Shown here in pieces: positions 12,120 through 26,433 of a stretch of 26,433 nt of DNA. The notes under the pieces were generated by a model. It was not told where the DNA came from and did no database searches. It was given only the letters and a program-made list of their open reading frames with translations. Both the position numbers and the translations under genes were made by a program. The stretch comes from Bugula neritina (taxonomy: Eukaryota > Animalia > Bryozoa), in NCBI GenBank assembly GCA_964035545.1, contig CAXIUT010000057.1, positions 391,153-417,585 of the forward strand. Direction: 5' to 3'. Positions within the stretch are counted from its first letter, which is position 1, and the number at the start of each line of letters is the position of its first letter.

Positions 12120-14218
12120 TCAAAGTTCATCGTAGTTCTTGAGGTCATTCAAGTCAACAAAACATTCACATGCCTAGTAATCTGAGAATCCAAGATGATT
12201 TAAATTTTATGCAGTTCTGCGGTTTCTGTCTTTGGCTCTCTACCAAAACTAACGTTTATCTTCTCCCAAAAACATAGGAGCATCTTTCTGAGATTGATGC
12301 TTCCAAATTGCAACCGTCTTGTTCTCTACATCTTTAGGAGACATAGGCACTATCATCCGAGCCATAGCGATACTCCATTCTTCCCAAGCACCTCTGTAGA
12401 GTAAGAAATTCTAAGCTGAAGGCATAAGAGATTTGTATCCTTCTTAAAGTTTTGCCTTTTTGTGCTAAGCATCAAATACATGTAGCAAAATTTATAGACA
12501 GCAACGGTGAGTGCCATGAGGGTCAGTTAGATCACCTGAAATAGTAAATAAATACCTGCAGCGAAGATAATGGTAGGTTCAATTAACCTCAATAAACTTC
12601 TGATTTCATTATGATCTTATTATGATGGTCTTGTTCGATTGAAATGATTAGTTCCATAAAAAGGCAATTACAAACAATACGCATGAGCTGAAGTCAATCC
12701 AACATAATTGAGTGCAATTTTAGCTTAACTACTTCTGATAAACTTTTTAATCGACCAATTTAAATCTGTTTTTCTATCTTACTCTTTTTATTTATCATAG
12801 ACATGGTCAGCTTATTCAAGTAGACTATTAAATTTGGTAACAAATTTTGAATTTTATTAGCTTTTAGCCATTTTCCAGAAATACTCATTAGTAAAATCTT
12901 TCATAAAATAGATATATTTTCTTGCCTAGAGATCATTTACTCCATTAGAACCAGATGTCATATAAGCCACATGGATATCATGTCCCTGCTCGTGTAATTT
13001 TCTTAATGTACCTCCCATAGAGATCACATCATCGTCAGGATGAGGTGAAAATATCAATATTTTTTACTTCACTAAACTTTTCCTCTTTATCTTCATATTC
13101 TATATATCATTTATATCACCAATTGGAGGCTTACCACCCACTGGCCATCCTGTTATCTTCTGGAATATACTGCGATAAACATAAAGATTCAAATCCTATA
13201 CGCTACCATTGGCTACTTCCATAACCAGTTGTGATAAGTTGTGATCTTAGTAGTCGTCATAGGTCAATCGAAGTAAAGGTTTTTTAACTTTTTTAGATAA
13301 CCATGTTACACTCTTCAAAATCCAATATGGAGTTTTAGGAACAATGGGATCTTAGATATCTCCCTTTATGACCCATGGGGTAGTAAATCTAGTTAATTTT
13401 TAACCTGCAGCTTTATCAAGGAAAAACACAATATCTGGATGATCATGAAGAAATGTCGAAGGAATTTATGTTTTAGTTTATCCTTAGATAGTTTTTTTAA
13501 CAATTGGAGCCTTGCTTTCAGACCAAGCCATAATGATGATTTTCCTTGCTTTTTTAATAGTATCAATTCCCATACTAATCGCACATTTTGGTACATTTTA
13601 CATCCCTCCAAAAGAATTAGCCGCATCTTTTCTAGTAAGTCTATGCAAATAGACAAGTCTTGTGATACTTTTAATAGGCGAAGGAGGTTAATTGAATCCA
13701 ATGTGTCCAGTTCTACCAATACCAAGCAACTGGATATCAATTCCACCATATGATGCTATTTTCTTTTAATATTCCAAACAGTATTTAGTGACATCGTTTC
13801 TATTGAGTTCTCCATTGGGAATGTTGATGTTTTCTTTGGGGATGTCGATGTGGTTGAAAAGATTGAAATTCATGTAGTAATTGTAAGATTAGGGATCGTT
13901 CTTGCTTATTGGAAAGTATTAGTCCAAGTTGAAAGTTACTACTCTCTTAAAACTCAATTATCCATTCTTATGCATGCGAATCAATTCCTTGTAAACTCGC
14001 AAAGGAGTACTCCCAGTCGCTAGTCCCACCACACAGATCTCATCTTTAGCATTTTTTCTTAAGATTTCATCTTTGATAGCTTTGGCTGCAGCAATAGATC
14101 CTTAGGCTGAGGTAGGAAAAAATCTGCTAGACATCTTTTCGATGAGCGAGAACCTAGCAAATTTAGAGAGGTAGTTGCAGGTATCTTTAATGGGCACATC
14201 CTGTTCTAGTTTAAGCAT
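12120..14218 (-). CDS. nagB: Long-form glucosamine-6-phosphate deaminase (NagB) fused to a PIG-L/LmbE-family deacetylase domain, about 692 aa
   Basis: NagB motifs [15 protein letters not shown] and [21 protein letters not shown]. The second domain has [40 protein letters not shown] and KHQSQKD. One 20-nt intron at 12536-12555. Confidence 0.95.
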
Positions 14219-14326
14219 CTTATGCAACAGTTGTCAAAATGTTTAAATAATATAAGTGTTGATAAATTACTCTATTTTAAAATATTGACTTATTTTATAT
14301 CTACAACTACTACCAGTAATAATATA

Positions 14327-17300
14327 TCAATACAGAAAATCATTTTAGTTCACCTAGACAGTATTGATGAGTTGCCCCTATATTTATAAACTCATATAAA
14401 ATGAACCTTTTTAGTAAGTTAGTATTTTCTAGGTACGATGTCTGATTAATCCTTTCATCTAGTCCTGCCAGAAAAAAGAAATATCCCAATTAGCATAACA
14501 TACTTTTTAGTTATCTACTTGTTAGGGATGATATCGACCAAAGAGTTGTTTGTTGAACATTGGGATGATAAATTATATTTTTTATGAGGTTTATTCTTTC
14601 AAATCTAACTATACTTCTTCAATTGATTTGTAGCCTTTAGAAAAATATAATTTCGAGCTGTTTTTTGTTAATTTCAATGAACATATGACCTTGTTCTATG
14701 TCTTTACTACTACATTGCCAAATAACTTAAATAGCCCTTCATCAGCGGTAAAGGTATCTTTGAATTGAGAAATAAATTTAAATCTTGACAAATCTATTTT
14801 TTATAAACCATAATTTTAACGATTCTAGTATTACTCAAATTCCTACTTTGATAGTATTTTATTAACTGCAGTCATATTTTAAATCTATTTTGTTATTTTA
14901 ATATGAGAAGCTAATTTAGATGGAATATTCTTCATAGAAAATAGATAAGACGATGATTTGGCATTGTTGGGAGTGAATTTCTAAATTTATTATGATTGAA
15001 AATATGAATGATTTTTATTTTGAAATGATGATATTTGACTACATTCTACTGATAGATATGGATCGAATTAGGAATCGATCTTTCTTGGTATTGTTAGTCT
15101 CTAATATGCATATATATTGCCTTTCTTATGAATAAAACCTGACTTAGTTATCTCAGAAAACTAATTTCCACGATAATATATCATTTGATTAGTAATAGCA
15201 GTCTAAAGATAGTCAACATATCTTTTAAATAAAGAATTAGCGTAAGATAGTTAGCATTCTTTCGATAAAGCCCAAAATCTAATAACGAAATTGTTGTTTT
15301 GAGTTAGACTGCTTAAAGCAAAAGCTGATGGTGTTTTATTTATGAAGAATAAGGTTATGTAGGTTTGCTAAACTACTGTTTCTTTTAAAACTTTTTATAT
15401 GTCATAGTATTTTATATAATTTTAGTGGATTGGGAATGATTTTAAAAATGAACTAAACTCTTTCATTGTTATACTATTTATCTTCATCTTTATTTATATC
15501 TTTTCAGGCATTTTATTCTCTTTTATTTATGGTTTATTAAACTATTTTATCACTTTAGCTTTTTATTATTTTTATTGCTATTTTTAATGCTCGACTCTTT
15601 ATTTATTTACTTTCATTATCTATTCTTTTATTTCTATCTTTTATTAGTGTCTAATATTATTTTTCTCTTTTAGTTTAGACTAATTAAAAATAACTTTTTT
15701 CTTTTCCATTTCATTGTTATCTTATGAAATTCCTGTTATCTTTATTACTGAATTTTGACTTTACAATTTAGACATTTTCAATAAGTTTTATTATTTTCTT
15801 TTTTAATTGGTCTTCACTAATTTATTTCTCTCTTACTTTATTGTTAACTACTAAGATAATTATCTTTATTAAGGTTATTTTACTTTAATATCAATCTTTT
15901 TTATTGAATATTTATCAAGTTATTCTTTTTTATCAGCTATATTTACTTTTTAATTTATTTTCCCAATAGAAAATGGTCGTATTTCTATATTAATTAAATT
16001 TTTAGTCTTAAAATTATTTTATTTTTTATCATTTTAATAAATACCATCATCTTTTTCTTTCATAATCTTTCCTATTTATTAAATTTTATCTTTAGAAAAT
16101 GAAGCACTTTTATTATGTTTTTTCTGATTAACCAATCTATACTATTTATATGGATTAATAATAGCTGATTATGAATTAACCTTCTCAAAATGTTTAATTT
16201 TTTTATATTTTATTCCAGAAATATACTCTCTTATCTATTTACTATTTTTTATTCTCTATTTCTCAGCCTAAATTTTATTTTCACTAATATAATGTGATTT
16301 TTGTCTTTTTATTTTACCTGGCTAATGTATTTCCTCTTTAATCAGATTATTTCTTTACTATTTGATTTTTTATCTACGAGTATTCGAGATAGTAACCTTT
16401 TAGTTATTTATCTTTTTAATTGGATAAGATATTTTTCTGTATTTCATTAAAAGATTATCTTTTTTGCTTTATTTTTGATTAATTTTTTTTTTATGATTTT
16501 CTAGTATGATTTTAAAGAGTTTTGTATTTTGTCCTTAACATATCTTTTTCATTCTTTTTATTTTCATATTATTACTACTACTTAGAATTAGAAAAACTTG
16601 AAAATACTTGTCGATTTTCATAATTTTGAGGTTATCTAATAAGCTATCTTCGATTTAAGCTTACTATAGGTAATTATATTTTTTTAATAAGTTTTTAATG
16701 AAGTTAATCTTCTTGCTATTATCCAGATATCCAACTTATCAACAACCTTTTCATCTTAAGTAAATCATAGCTCTACTAAATAGAAATATTAGTTATCTAG
16801 CTTAATGCCTAATTCCACTAGCTATTACTGGAATTATTAACAAGTTTAAAATAGATAAAAAAAGGGTCATATTGAGGTTTCCAAACTAAATACTTCTTTA
16901 ATTAGCTTTTTAATAGTTACTAAGGAAGTTTATTTAAACTTTTAGCAAAAGATGAATAAATCTATTTACAATTTAGTATTAATTTAGTATTTTATATTTT
17001 TCTAAACTTCTACTTCACCATATTAAGATAATACGTAGCTTTAAAATTAACTTTTCTTAGTTTAATTATCAACCTACAAAACCTAATTAAATCAAACTGA
17101 TGAATTTTACCTTCATTTTGCATTCTAATACTCAACTTAAGATAACTTTATAATTTATTTTTTTAGGTCTATTCTTTCAAAAATAAATTAATCGGACTAT
17201 TTAGCAAAGAAATCTCCTGAATTTATTGTTTCATTGCTTGTTAGGCTTCCCTTTTTGATACTTTTTTCAAAGAATCAATAAAAAGTTATTGATAAAAGAG

Positions 17301-17408
17301 CGGAATGTTATGAAAATCATAACAATCTATTAGTTGAGCTTGAGTCGTCAAAGAGAAGTCAAGTCGCTTGGAGTGACATTCTTTGTTTTTATTTTATAGA
17401 GCTTTCAT
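14327..17408 (-). CDS. Large hypothetical protein (about 1000 aa) with a Glu/Lys/Asn/Ile-rich central region
   Basis: About 3 kb is TGA-free apart from one +1 frame break, most likely in the T10 run at about 16483-16492. It ends at TGA 14327-14329. No domain was recognised, and it may be the continuation of the upstream HEPN gene. Confidence 0.65.
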
Positions 17409-17431
17409 CGATGAATATATTAATACTATTG

Positions 17432-18051
17432 TCAGATGTTTTTGATAGTAGATTATTTATAATAAATATGATGAATAAGTTATTATGAGTAAAGGCAATC
17501 ATTCATTGACTTTTGTTTTTGAGTCTTAATAAGTGAGTTATACTTTTATACGCTGAAGTAGAGGAGTCTTTATCGATAGAGTTATATTTTTTTGAAGAGT
17601 TCGTAATTGGGATCTCCTGAAAACCCTTAATAGATCAGAGATAGAGTATCAAATGCTCTTTCTGTGTTCAATAATACCTGCAAGCGAATCGAATGTCAAA
17701 TTCCTAAACTTTCCAATGAGCCCATGCATTTCTGACAGATTTAAGTTCAAAAAGCCATGAACGTAGAAATGGTTTGATTTTTATGTTATCCTTGAGGAAG
17801 GCTGTTTACTTAATGAATTACATTAGGCAATTTTGTCATATCTTGAAGTATCAGTGATGTAATTGATGTATCCTAGTAAGTCATTGTTCTGATGATAAAG
17901 GAAGTACTTGATTGGGTAGTGGGAATTAGTAATTGTTATTATTACAGTAGATGCTTACAATTTATCTGAGAACTAATTGGCCCATATCAACTAACTCCCC
18001 CACTAAATGCTTTGCTGACATCTGGTCGATACCTATTGCTATTGTCTGCAT
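17432..18051 (-). CDS. Swt1-like HEPN domain protein (putative RNase), about 186 aa
   Basis: Removing introns at 17889-17907, 17802-17821 and 17658-17677 gives ...LVGELVDMGQLVLREIV...DLLGYI...LRSWLFELKSVRNAWAHWKVEEFDIRFACRAFDTLSLI... The RxxxxH motif lies at 17716-17733. Confidence 0.75.
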
Positions 18052-18213
18052 CTTACCGCCTTATTGATTTATTATAATCAGTTGATTCAACTCCAACAAA
18101 TCTATCAAATCACTTCAATATTAACATTGTACTTAAAATAAAAACAAAAATAAATGAAATATTAAGATGATAGTAGTTGTGGTGATGAATATGATATATT
18201 GAGATATTTTGGA

Positions 18214-18381
18214 TCATATGAGGGCGGCAATGAGGAGGACCAAAGAGAGCAAGGCAGCTATGTATGGTTCTGAAAGCATAGCGCTAACGACAGTAGATTG
18301 ATCATGAGTTTAAAGCAGGTTTGCTGAGGCCTAGGATACGAGAGTCAAGATGACTAAAAGCAAGATCACTAACTTGTTCAT
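18214..18381 (-). CDS. 55-aa peptide with a signal peptide and a C-terminal hydrophobic tail (candidate GPI-anchored or single-pass micropeptide)
   Basis: MNKLVILLLVILTLVSEASANLLETHDQSTVVSAMLSEPYIAALLSLVLLIAALI*. It is GC-richer than its very AT-rich flanks. Confidence 0.7.
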
Positions 18382-18637
18382 TAATTTATAATAATTTTTA
18401 TTTAATAAATTTGAATTTAATAACATCTATTCTCAACTAAAACAACCCCTCCTTTGATAAAATTTAATAATTAATAATGGAATTTTATTAATTAAGATGA
18501 TTTTTTGTCTGAAATGACCAAAATGAATAATATTAATCAAATAAACTAATCAATTATCTTGTTTTCATCATTTTTTAAATACTTATTTAATTCCCCTAAT
18601 ATTTAATGAACTAAATTATTCTCAATTAATTTATTAA

Positions 18638-19309: not shown

Positions 19310-20965
19310 TCAGTTCAAAAATATTTCATTTTTTTTGAACATTTCATCGAAAGATTCGACAAATATGTTAGCTGCCTTAGTATATGTACTCCTATCAATA
19401 GTTGTCAGCCATACTTCCTTTACTCTTCTGCAATTTTATAGCTTACTAAAAAAAGGCTAAAGGACCCATCTAGGATCACCCAAATCTTCACATATAGGAA
19501 ACACAAGTGTCTCCAAACTGATAGGTTTCTCAATTTTATCTGCAAATTTCAATACTTAATGAATTCCTTTTTGTAGACTTTCCTGTATTTAATTTTTATC
19601 AATTTTCAGGAAGACCAATGCTTAAAATGAAAAAACTTCAACTGCTTTTTGAAGATACACCCCTCCTGGAGCAGATATTTCACTACCTTTAGAGATAATC
19701 TTTTTCCGGTAGTCAACTGATGAAGAATTAATGACATTTCCTGGATAGTACTCCATCTGAGTAGTAGAATATGGAATCACCAACAATTTGCATCTGAAAT
19801 CAGCTAGCATTCTAGCAGTCAATGAGATGCGGCAACCTAAAATATTGAGAGATATTTATGGCCAACATTTACGACCTTTTGGTGGTAGTTGCTGAGTAGT
19901 CAAACAGACTACTTTTTAAGATTATTTGCTGGTATTTGATTGATTATTGTTTGAATTTGCTTCATTGGTTTTATATGTTTATTTGTTATCTATAAATCTT
20001 TCATTTTGTTAGAATTTATTATTATTATTTCTGAAACCTCCCTAATTATGATTATTATTGTTCCTATAATTCCCTTCATTGTTATTTCTGTGTCCTCCTT
20101 AATTATTTTGATAGTTATTATTATTATAATTTCTATTATTATAATTTCCAGTATAATTTCTATCTCTTTGTTGATAATTTTGATAACCTCTTCCACCATA
20201 CTCCTTTCTTCCCCTTCCATCATCTTCTCCCTAATCTTTCTATCGATACTTTCTATTATTATTATTATTATTATTATAGCCACCACCTTATCGATTGTTT
20301 CCCTGATAACCATTGTTATCTCGATAATTATTATTATTATAGTTGTTATTGTAACCTCCTCTTCCTCGATAATTGCCTCGATTTCCTTACCAGTTTTGGC
20401 CTTATCGAGCTTCACCTGTCTAAAACGTACCTCTCTTCTTTTGAAATCCATCTTGACGATTTCCTCTTCTTTAGCCCTCATTCTCTCTGTGAAATTATCG
20501 GTTTCCTCTCCTTTAACCTTCTTCTCGATTTCCTCGTTTTGGAGTCTCTCTTTCTTCCACCTATTTTTCCTGCCTTGAATTTCTATTACCTCTATTTCCT
20601 CTATTTCCACTTGTTTATTCTCTTTTTTTATTTTATTCGAAATCGTTAGTCCATGATGTATTCACTTCATCTGCTTTTAATTCCTGTAATTCTTAACCTT
20701 TAAGAAAAGAAGTATTTAAATGATTTTGGTTGATAAAAGTCGTTTATAATTTAGCTGGCAAGTCTCCAGGCTATTATTTTTACTCTTACTTCTAATCCCC
20801 ATCAAGCCAATTGCTTTCATTGAGAATATTATTGACAGGCTACTCTTTTTTATCTCTAGATGAATCTTTAGTTGAAGTGGGAGTGCTCTACTTTTTTTCT
20901 TCTTTGTTTGAGTTAGATTAGCAACTTTCCTAGGGCTACATACCCCAGCTATCATCAGGATCCAT
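19310..20965 (-). CDS. RG/RGG- and Asn/Tyr-rich low-complexity protein with a C-terminal degenerate macrodomain-like region, about 551 aa
   Basis: A single intronless frame from MDPDDSWG. The middle has RGNRGNR, YRGRGGYNNN and GGRGYQ. The C-terminal alpha/beta region (ISLTARMLADFRCKLLVIP..., APGGVYL, HEVLKFAD...ETLVFPI, VKEVWL) follows macrodomain spacing. Confidence 0.72.
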
Positions 20966-21134
20966 GCAAAAAAATTATTATAACAAGCGGTAAAATCAAT
21001 ACTTAGATTTATATTTATGCTAGCATTAAGTTAATATAAGTAAAAGCATAAAATAAGAGTTTGCTTATTCTGAAAAAGGAGACAAATATAAATATATCAA
21101 ATAAAGTTTTACCTGTTATCTATATAATTTAAAT

Positions 21135-23258: not shown

Positions 23259-24255
23259 ATGAGTCCTCAAGCATCCTCACCTGCTCAAAAACCAGCTCAA
23301 AGTGGTTCCTATAAGGTCTTAAAAGATTTTTTGTTAGGAGGTACTTCAGGGGCTATCGCTAAAACTTTGGCTGCTCCCATTGAAAGAGTCAAGCTACTTC
23401 TACAAACTCAAGAAAACAATCCAAAACTTATGGAAAGACCATACAAAGGTAGCTAGAATATAATTCAGGAATTGTGGATTGTTTCAAAAGATGTGTCACA
23501 TAAGAAGGATTTACATCTCTATGGAGAGGCAACTGGGCCAACGTGGTTAGATACTTCCCTACCCAAGCCATCAACTTCGCAACCAAAGATGCTCTATATC
23601 AAATTTTCCTAAAAGGAGTTGATCCTAAAGTAGAAAGATTTCAATATCTTATTAGATCTTTGCTTTCAGGTGGTTTGGCTGGAAGTTTTAGTTTGGTTTT
23701 TGTTTATCCTTTGGATTTCGCAAGAACACGTCTTGGAGCTGATATTGGTAAATCTGAAGCTGAACGTTAATTCAATGGACTTATCGATTGCTGCCGTAAA
23801 ATATTCCAAAAAGATGGAGTTAAAGGTCTTTATCAAGGCTTCCAAGTATCAGTATTAGGTATCTTCACTTACAGAGCCTTCTATTTCGGGTAATTAGTTC
23901 TTTATTTAGAGGTTATGATGCTGGAAAATCATTTATTTGGGGTTCAGAATAATAACAGAAGAAATCATCCTTTTTTGCTAGATTTTTGTTTGCTCAAATA
24001 ATAACTTCAACTTCCTAGACCTTGGCTTACCCCTTAGACACAATCAGAAGAAGATTGATGATGGAGAGTGGAAAAGCTGTTAACGAAAGAATGTATGCAG
24101 GAACTTTGGATTGTGGAAGCAAGATTTTGAAAAGTGAAGGTGTTACAGGATTCTTCAAAGGTAACTTATCAAACTTCTGGAGAAGTATTGGATCTTCTCT
24201 CGTATTGGTCCTTTACGATTAACTACAAAAATATGTTCAAGGCAAGGGATATTGA
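23259..24255 (+). CDS. AAC: Mitochondrial ADP/ATP carrier, about 318 aa
   Basis: Motifs [39 protein letters not shown] and [12 protein letters not shown]. Introns at 23449-23468 and 23890-23909 (20 nt each). Confidence 0.97.
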
Positions 24256-24462
24256 TCTATTAGACAACAGTAATATCGATCTTTAATATTTAATTTATTT
24301 TGTTAAACAAAGAGTTAGACTAACTTTAGTTAATAAGCTCAAGCGTTTTTTCAATAGTTCTGATCTGAAAGGTGATATAAATCATAGGTGTTTGATTTAT
24401 GGGATTGAGTATAAGTATTGATGGTCTGATGATTGATGACTTCAATAATATTTTAAATATCC

Positions 24463-26250
24463 ATGGACAAGTCGAAGATGGCAAAGATCAAAGAGGAAGC
24501 TGCTAAGTTAGGCACTTCCTACTATAAGTTTGTCTAGCCTTTTATCATCAACATCAACTAAAAGATCGGACGAGGCTCTTACGGAGAAGTCTTTAAAGGC
24601 GCTGATATTAGAAATGGTAACCTCGTCGCTGTCAAAACAATCGCTACTTCTAACATAAAAAAAGATCCATAAAAATTTTACGACTCCCTAAAAAATGAGA
24701 TCTAGATTATGAAGTCAATAAAGAACCCAAACATAGTGGAATTGTATGATGTAAAAAAATCATCAAACAACATTTATTTATTCCAAGAACTATGCGATAA
24801 AGGATCTCTTGAGGATATCCTCTAAAAAAGAAAAAAAATACCATAATCAGAAACAGTACTTATTATCCAACAACTAATACAAGGCTACAAATATTTACAT
24901 CAACATTCTGTCATACATCGAGACCTGAAACCAGCAAACATATTGATCAAAGACGAAACCTACAAAATAGCTGATTTTGGATTTGCTAAATACTATCAAT
25001 AAGGAGCATAACTCGATCAAATTCACCAGTCACTAGTAGGCAGTCCCATGTATATGTGTCCATAGATCCTCAATGGCAGCACATATTCAACAAAAAGTGA
25101 TGTATGGTCAATGGGAGTAATATTCTATCAGATGTTGTATGGCAAAACACCACATAAGGCAACATCACTGTAAGAACTGATCTCTAAAGTAAATAAAAAG
25201 GTGATTAGATTTCCACAAAAGCTAACTACACCAGGACTACAATAACTTCTTGAAGCTATGTTGAAATATACACCATAGTAGAGGATGAGTTGGAAAGATA
25301 TATTCAATTTGTAGATGTTCAGATCAAAATAGAAAGAAGACAATGATATAAATAGATCAATGTCAATGGCCCAAAAGAATTCTAAAAATAAATTATAAAT
25401 GAGCACCAAGATGAATGATTTCTACTTCGCAGACAAAAAAGTTATCCAGCAGATAGAACTAGTCAACGGCAGCTAAGATAAATAAATATCAGTTGTACAA
25501 TCCAGAGATGCTAATTAAACCAAATAACAAGATATATATAAATCAATCGCACAAAAATATGAATAAACCTAAAGCAAAAAAGATATAATAAGAAAGATTA
25601 AGAATTGGTTCTTATTCAAAAGAAACAAAGCTGTCTTTCTTAACCATCTCTCACTAAAAATACATAATTGCTTTGCCCTATAGAAATTGAATATTCCTCT
25701 TCATAAAGCATAAATCTTTATCTTGGTTTTATCTAAATGGCAATGCATGATTACTTATAAAAGTTACATTCGATTAAAAGAAGGTAAAATCAACTCTAAA
25801 GCCTATACTGAAGAACAGTATAAACTCTTTGTTAATAACAATATTCGAGATAAAATCATGGATAAATTCAAAAATGATTTTACTGTCATGAAGATGTTCT
25901 TTGATTAACTTGTCAAAAAAGTAGAAGCTTACCTTGCTAAATACTAAGGCGATCTTCCTTAAAACCTCAAAAGAATCAAAAAAATATGCAATCAATCCCT
26001 CTGCCCCAAGGAACTCTTCGCTCAAATTTACAACTAAACCATCGATTAACTCAAAGAAGTCATCAAGGAAGCCATCAAAAACGATTCCAAATGCAGAGAT
26101 GTGATTCAGTTAGGATATTTAGTTAGTGAGGCCATGAAGCTTAAGAAAGACTAGTTGGAGACAAACTAGTTTTCGATGATCTATGACTATGAAGAAAAAC
26201 TAACCAACTAGGAACTGATCTTCAAGATTTAAGGGAAAATTATTGAATGA
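24463..26250 (+). CDS. Ser/Thr protein kinase (ULK/Atg1-like) with a helical C-terminal region, 595 aa, intronless
   Basis: Motifs [45 protein letters not shown] and SDVWSMG. One frame runs to TGA 26248-26250. Confidence 0.93.
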
Positions 26251-26322
26251 TAACACTATGATATTCATAGCATCAAATCTATCATCATCATACTATCAAT
26301 ACTAATTATAATATAGTATTCA

Positions 26323-26433
26323 GGGGTTGGGGTTGGGGTTGGGGTTGGGGTTGGGGTTGGGGTTGGGGTTGGGGTTGGGGTTGGGGTTGGGGTTGGGGTT
26401 GGGGTTGGGGTTGGGGTTGGGGTTGGGGTTGGG
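26323..26433. repeat. Right telomere, (GGGGTT)n
   Basis: Perfect GGGGTT tandem repeats run to the end of the sequence and are the reverse complement of the left end. Confidence 0.97.

Follow-up and report, generated by a model that had tools for sequence, protein, structure and literature searches.

The stretch of DNA analysed here, 26,433 nucleotides long and referred to throughout as the window, carries a split gene encoding an HEPN protein. In our assessment this is very likely a single-copy, three-intron nuclear gene of a ciliate that reads TAA and TAG (TAR) as glutamate, whose product would comprise a single HEPN domain, which belongs to the Swt1/Ava_2192 family (PF18731), an extra conserved helix and an unconserved tail, and would fulfil a conserved role on RNA.

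The window (G000:C66:391153-417585) starts with C4A2 repeats (1-95) and ends with G4T2 repeats (26250-26433), and on scaffold C66 a run of N stands between it and the G4T2 telomere of the adjoining piece (L001:1725-2095). Since telomeres are present at both ends and an N run precedes the next telomere, the window is one complete 26.4-kb telomere-capped macronuclear chromosome of a ciliate. The meeting of two telomeres across the N run also reveals the nature of the 'contigs' of this assembly, which are strings of separate telomere-capped chromosomes joined through N.

In this ciliate TAA and TAG are glutamate codons, as judged from aligned protein sequences. The strongest evidence for this is provided by the HEPN gene family itself, ahead of the motifs of kinase and deaminase genes. 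Indeed, residues 42, 70 and 137 of the HEPN protein, each encoded by TAR in the window, stand opposite Glu in all six aligned orthologs, and residue 103, likewise encoded by TAR, in five of the six. The gene of lineage L021 has no TAR codon at all, and its Glu residues are hence encoded by ordinary GAR codons; in L008, a TAR codon occupies the otherwise conserved Glu of IGECLD. Elsewhere in the window, TAR codons are found at the Glu of the APE motif of a kinase gene (24433-26250, plus strand) and at the Glu of the DEY and FNEP motifs of a glucosamine-6-phosphate deaminase (NagB) gene (12353-14233, minus strand), motifs that we take to be conserved and use as Glu markers. The deaminase-like part of the latter (..NLDeY.., ..GHIGFNeP..) is joined in one long frame by a C-terminal portion similar to LmbE/PIG-L deacetylases (..SPHPDDD..); by this assignment, made by eye only, the frame may be a fused two-enzyme gene.

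The HEPN gene occupies positions 17432-18051 of the minus strand, from an ATG at 18051 to a TGA at 17434-17432 (Table 1). An initial sequence-only reading had pointed out that the gene is missing from the track of open reading frames and, indeed, the standard-stop list contains no ORF of at least 70 aa between 13753 and 19990. It had also proposed that removing three GT-AG introns of 19-20 nt and reading TAR as Glu yields a protein of 186 aa. This model held: the spliced CDS (561 nt) is in frame, its exon structure is that of the orthologs, and its TAR codons align with Glu. All three introns (19, 20 and 20 nt) begin with GTA and finish with AG, and the 186-aa product, which includes 11 TAA/TAG codons, contains the strings RSWLFELKSV-RNAWAH-WKVEEF and RAFDTLSLI. 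An in-frame TGA is located some 20 codons upstream of the start ATG. Exon 1 codes for what is predicted to be HEPN helix 1 (..K.L.GE..D..); in exon 4, conservation extends from residue 112 to about residue 150 (helix 4 and the extra C-terminal helix), and the tail (about 150-186) is not conserved.

Table 1. Features of the HEPN gene in window coordinates.
Feature	Position	Strand	Details
HEPN domain, genomic span with introns	17582..18027	-	residues 9-137; global hhalign against bacterial PF18731 columns 1-138
Exon 1	17908..18051	-	144 nt; residues 1-48; ATG 18051-18049; collinear with exon 1 of all orthologs
Intron 1	17889..17907	-	19 nt; GTA..CAG; phase 0; follows ..PNQ
Exon 2	17822..17888	-	67 nt
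Intron 2	17802..17821	-	20 nt; GTA..CAG; phase 1
Exon 3	17678..17801	-	124 nt; encodes helix 3 and the catalytic motif
Codons of the Rx4H HEPN RNase motif	17716..17733	-	R94-N95-A-W-A-H99
Intron 3	17658..17677	-	20 nt; GTA..AAG; phase 2; inside ..ACR|AFDTL..
Exon 4	17432..17657	-	226 nt; stop TGA 17434-17432

A codon-usage score ranked the proposed frame first of the six possible frames for each of the four exons; the spliced CDS as a whole reached no more than the 89th percentile among all windows scored. TGA-free frames of more than 100 codons are common in every frame of the window, and ORF length alone consequently means little. Two public runs contain window DNA, both as genomic contigs collinear with the window, and are for this reason silent on splicing. 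Taken with the comparative data below, the sequences nonetheless leave hardly any doubt that the gene is real. Its true 3' end is uncertain, because the C-terminal tail (17432-17545; the last 35 or so residues) is unconserved in every ortholog, that of L008 included, overlaps a 406-codon TGA-free frame (16281-17498) that probably belongs to the downstream gene, and contains two indels of 1 nt each in public run X2 (a deletion at 17439, an insertion after 17460).

Orthologs were sought with the 31-aa stop-free core of the protein (window:17707-17799:-). In a set of 1.84 billion representative proteins this query matched two sequences, P0001 and P0002, both of them ciliate fragments, and further searches added P0003-P0020; all are fragments of ORFs called on metagenome or assembly contigs. 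A full-length, spliced and stop-free ortholog was sought among 5.8 billion proteins and none was found. We modelled the genes on the contigs, trying every possible set of at most three GT..AG elements between 15 and 30 nt long and keeping the one giving the best alignment to a spliced reference, which was the window protein alone in a first round and the proteins of the window, L021 and L015 in a second. Full-length collinear proteins were obtained in this manner from nine further ciliate lineages (L005, L009, L008, L015, L021, L027/L028, L227, L228 and L229), and the ortholog contigs L009, L011 and L227 end in G4T2 telomeres.

The nine lineages contain 23 introns, 17 of them of 20 nt and three of 19 nt, the remaining three (22, 27 and 19 nt) being less certain. 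Nearly every intron of the set begins with GTA. Intron 1 is found at the position it has in the window in all nine (that is, in 10 out of 10 lineages including the window). The position of intron 2 is common to eight of the nine, the exception being L027/L028, where the intron is missing and the protein reads unbroken through ..DKLLETFVKED... Intron 3 is present in four of the 10 lineages (the window, L008, L027/L028 and L229) and missing in L005, L009, L015, L021 and L228. In these five, the open frame is continuous through ..ANRAYDTLSLL.., precisely where the spliced window protein reads ..ACR|AFDTLSLI.., which, short of RNA, is the best proof there can be of the window junction. Introns present or absent at fixed positions can be inspected at window 17658-17677 and 17802-17821, L027:1244-1410, L005:2910-3016 and L229:1313-1568.

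The sequence-only reading had assigned the protein to the Swt1-like HEPN family, and profile searches bear this assignment out. Against Pfam, the 31-aa core has PF18731 (HEPN_Swt1) as its top match (17.0 bits, E 0.007, profile positions 76-92 of 115), below the curated cut-off of 27.5 bits, and Abi_2 (PF07751) as its second (E 0.018). The ortholog P0007, consisting of the last exon only (87 aa), exceeds the cut-off (30.0 bits, E 7e-7), while P0005, P0006, P0009, P0010, P0001 and P0002 score between 16 and 24 bits. PF18731 ranks first for every ortholog fragment, with Abi_2 second in the case of P0010. The N-terminal piece of the window protein gave no Pfam match, and a six-frame Pfam search of the window's own genome did not detect the gene because its exons are too short.

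To have true family members for comparison, we searched 1,103 genomes of three bacterial phyla with the PF18731 profile, found 75 genomes above the cut-off and translated 52 domains. An HMM built from these 52 bacterial domains gave 19-29 bits on seven spliced ciliate proteins, and 21.6 bits (about 1e-8 per sequence) on that of the window. Alignment of the seven ciliate proteins to the 52 bacterial domains with hhalign yielded a probability of 96.4% (P 1.2e-9) in local mode and of 97.4% (P 3.4e-11) in global mode, in which residues 9-137 of the window protein cover the whole domain; reversed and column-shuffled controls reached at most 2.4% (P 0.02 or worse). The C-terminal half alone gave P 3.7e-13, and the N-terminal halves matched weakly (P 0.017), helix 1 falling on helix 1. 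The homology signal thus sits almost wholly in the C-terminal half, where ciliate and bacterial domains have in common the pattern W/L..E...[IV]RN.WAH followed, after about 10 residues, by R..D[TS]...L. The 31-aa piece also retrieved a Swt1-like HEPN cluster in third place in the ESM Atlas (score 0.83), which we treat as a lead only. Sequence searches of the PDB with the 31-aa piece and with an ortholog profile returned nothing relevant apart from one chance match, to a cohesin (E 1.5). On this evidence, we assign the gene to the HEPN_Swt1 family with high confidence.

Stand-alone, active Swt1-family HEPNs derived from bacterial versions have been described in Naegleria, dictyostelids and Daphnia (Anantharaman et al. 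2013, PMC3710099); ciliates are not listed in that survey, and our literature search found no paper on HEPN proteins in ciliates, nor any searchable text citing the assembly accessions of two of the orthologs. Like the Naegleria, dictyostelid and Daphnia proteins, the ciliate protein is a single Swt1/Ava_2192-family HEPN whose Rx4H motif is intact, is fused to no other domain, and is closer to bacterial versions than to Swt1. Contrary to the situation in Daphnia, with 46 copies, the ciliate gene is single-copy and slowly evolving, a comparison made by description only.

Among bacterial proteins, those of the Ava_2192 type, which combine HEPN_Swt1 (PF18731) with a DUF499 AAA+ ATPase (PF04465), are the best matches to the ciliate profile. 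The top ones (L198, L200, L221, L201 and L199; 25-27 bits) are cyanobacterial proteins of about 1,100 aa, and the order HEPN_Swt1 then DUF499 was confirmed for L198 and L200. They carry the same core pattern as the ciliate protein. The latter, on the other hand, has no ATPase and is 186 aa long instead of about 1,100, and the N-terminal halves of both can barely be aligned. Ava_2192-type proteins, moreover, sit in restriction-modification operons (PMC3710099), a context that the ciliate gene lacks.

Eukaryotic Swt1, with a PIN endonuclease and two HEPN domains, goes by the same Pfam family name and belongs to the same HEPN subfamily, but the Rx4H motif of its HEPNs is lost or inactive (PMC3710099). 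We considered whether the 186-aa ciliate protein is a Swt1 ortholog and rejected this, because a PIN domain is missing and the single HEPN domain (residues 9-137) has an intact motif. The abortive-infection HEPNs Abi2/AbiD/AbiF (PF07751) are part of the same Abi2/Swt1 HEPN clade; PF07751 nevertheless always scores below PF18731, and the ciliate gene is eukaryotic, with introns, and not phage-associated. Another Swt1-family HEPN of alveolates is found in the apicomplexan MAL13P1.321/PY00838 family, where it is combined with aegerolysin (PMC3710099). The ciliate protein has no aegerolysin domains, and the two are likened here by description only; a shared alveolate origin of both HEPNs is possible.

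The way in which the gene evolves speaks to its function. It is single-copy in the 216-Mb assembly, whether searched for with a protein piece, with DNA or with the family profile. The dN/dS ratio is 0.026 between L005 and L009 (at dS 0.55) and 0.11 between L005 and L010, and 41 residues are invariant in an alignment of seven lineages. The nearest relative of the window protein is that of L008, with 59% identity, and synonymous sites between them are saturated. The HEPN gene is hence under strong purifying selection. The diverged variant carried by public run X2 differs at 11 of the 972 nt that cover the gene body (17495-18466) and at 32 positions, with two additional gaps, in 821 nt just downstream (16704-17524), a contrast that is consistent with stronger constraint on the HEPN gene.

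Comparison of synteny between the window and related loci revealed nothing shared except the HEPN gene itself, whose neighbours differ between lineages. In several relatives a ribosome-recycling-factor gene (PF01765; L021:4318-4677, L012:182-361) immediately precedes it, and a thiolase gene stands in head-to-tail orientation to it, an arrangement that is absent from the window. The upstream neighbour in the window (19310-20995, minus strand) encodes a long Gly/Asn/Arg-rich low-complexity region (GNRGN repeats and NNNY runs) ahead of a globular C-terminal portion. Further away, a stop-free piece at 23543-23767 (plus strand) has a match in the family of mitochondrial carriers (PF00153, E 7e-10).

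As a rule, families of immune effectors expand and diverge. Because the ciliate gene is single-copy, has a very low dN/dS and shows no expansion, we argue for a conserved cellular RNA-cleaving role; judging by copy number and evolutionary rate, the protein would perform a task in RNA processing or RNA decay rather than act as a fast-evolving immune effector. We regard it as unlikely that it is instead a defence or toxin-like effector, be it an antiviral or anti-transposon RNase or a suicide RNase of the abortive-infection kind. Such a function would be in line with the restriction-modification operons in which its closest bacterial relatives, the HEPN_Swt1-DUF499 proteins, are encoded, and with the defensive roles predicted for the stand-alone active HEPNs of Daphnia, Naegleria and dictyostelids (PMC3710099), but sits poorly with a single-copy gene without lineage-specific expansion, with very strong purifying selection (dN/dS 0.03-0.11) and with the lack of any partner gene or conserved neighbour at the window and related loci.

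We then come to the question of catalysis. The residues R94, N95 and H99 are identical in all 10 lineages, and form an Rx4H motif with a polar residue right after the arginine. The HEPN fold is an up-down bundle of four helices, with an insert between helices 2 and 3. [quoted passage not shown] In the AlphaFold model of the C-terminal piece of ortholog P0005 (96 aa, pLDDT 80), a helix spanning residues 5-35 ends exactly at the catalytic His35, and is followed by helices 43-59 and 67-95. A Foldseek search of the PDB with this half-domain model found only generic helical bundles (E 1.9 or worse) and nothing specific. The ciliate proteins end 30-70 residues beyond the HEPN domain. Since the R-N-x3-H motif is intact and invariant, an active RNase is plausible, and on balance we lean towards catalytic activity. 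As established HEPN biochemistry would predict, the protein would form a homodimer in which two R-N-x3-H motifs build one composite site, and would cleave RNA without metal ions to leave 2',3'-cyclic phosphate ends.

A protein that binds or senses RNA without cutting it, in the way suggested for the HEPNs of eukaryotic Swt1, is a somewhat less likely alternative than a defence effector. HEPN domains are able to act as binders (PMC3710099), the N-terminal half of the ciliate protein is highly diverged, and the upstream acidic residue of the Ex3[KR] motif, which in HEPNs belongs to the N-terminal hairpin, is not kept in the window protein, where it is a Ser: in the global hhalign alignment, whose N-terminal match is weak, bacterial ..VERELR.. 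stands opposite ..I/VEVYC.. in most orthologs and ..VSIYC.. in the window. On the other hand, the arginine, the following asparagine and the histidine are identical throughout the 10 lineages, whereas inactive Swt1 HEPNs have lost the motif (PMC3710099).

Where the gene comes from was approached through its relatives. No relative came up when single genomes of 185,579 prokaryotic species were scanned for the motif, and the search of the 1.84 billion representative proteins with the 31-aa core yielded no prokaryotic one either. The maximum-likelihood tree that we built from 52 bacterial and seven ciliate domains unites the ciliates in a single clade (100/100) inside bacterial diversity, with a stem 2.7 substitutions per site long. 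This clade is attached to a cyanobacterial protein of 1304 aa (87/85), a placement that is unreliable because it lies on so long a stem. The tree is consistent with one old acquisition before the ciliate lineages split. As it does not include eukaryotic Swt1-family sequences, the case for a lateral origin comes only from the overall distribution of the family. By analogy with the other eukaryotic stand-alone members, the ultimate origin is probably bacterial but ancient, and a transfer, if there was one, would be older than the divergence of lineages between which synonymous sites are saturated.

The sequence-only reading had put forward a possible lateral acquisition and had suggested that the protein could be part of an undescribed RNA-surveillance or antiviral system. 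Neither idea fared well: the former is left with no close prokaryotic relative, a stem of 2.7 substitutions per site and an unreliable placement, and the latter with a single-copy gene, without conserved neighbours, under strong purifying selection. A version joining both, in which a bacterial restriction-modification-associated HEPN was domesticated long ago and became an active single-copy enzyme central to an undescribed RNA-surveillance or antiviral pathway in ciliates with TAR=Glu and 20-nt introns, strikes us as doubtful, about as much so as a non-catalytic protein. If it were true, the enzyme might, for example, cut foreign RNAs that are unspliced or contain stop codons and that would stand out in a cell reading UAA and UAG as sense.

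The same reading was right that host-type introns argue against contamination, since introns of ciliate type in all 10 lineages rule out a bacterial contaminant. A recent transfer from bacteria, or a bacterial contaminant in the assembly, would suit a mainly bacterial family, but has a negligible probability, both being refuted by the three ciliate-type introns, the 11 TAR=Glu codons and the position of the gene inside a chromosome capped by C4A2/G4T2 telomeres, to which the lack of a close prokaryotic relative and the long stem of the ciliate clade can be added. There is just as little room for a spurious TGA-free frame holding an accidental Rx4H string, assembled in AT-rich DNA by picking GT-AG pairs: abundant TGA-free frames and the unremarkable codon-usage score of the spliced CDS would allow it, but it is refuted by the comparative data, that is, by orthologs with the same exon structure in nine other lineages, intron-less junctions in relatives that agree with the spliced product, a dN/dS far below 1 and a significant match to the PF18731 profile.

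The ciliate gene is hence a previously unannotated addition to the known stand-alone eukaryotic Swt1-family HEPNs and not a new type of system, and it leaves the understanding of HEPN domains and of ciliate biology unchanged. Standard annotation is blind to this family, of which every database entry found is an ORF fragment, since the frame is interrupted by very short introns and by TAR codons for Glu. Its orthologs constitute a natural experiment on the gain and loss of 19-20-nt introns at fixed positions. With this gene, ciliates would join the short list of eukaryotes with a stand-alone, apparently active Swt1/Ava_2192 HEPN, and its single copy and strong purifying selection point to an unstudied housekeeping role in RNA cleavage.
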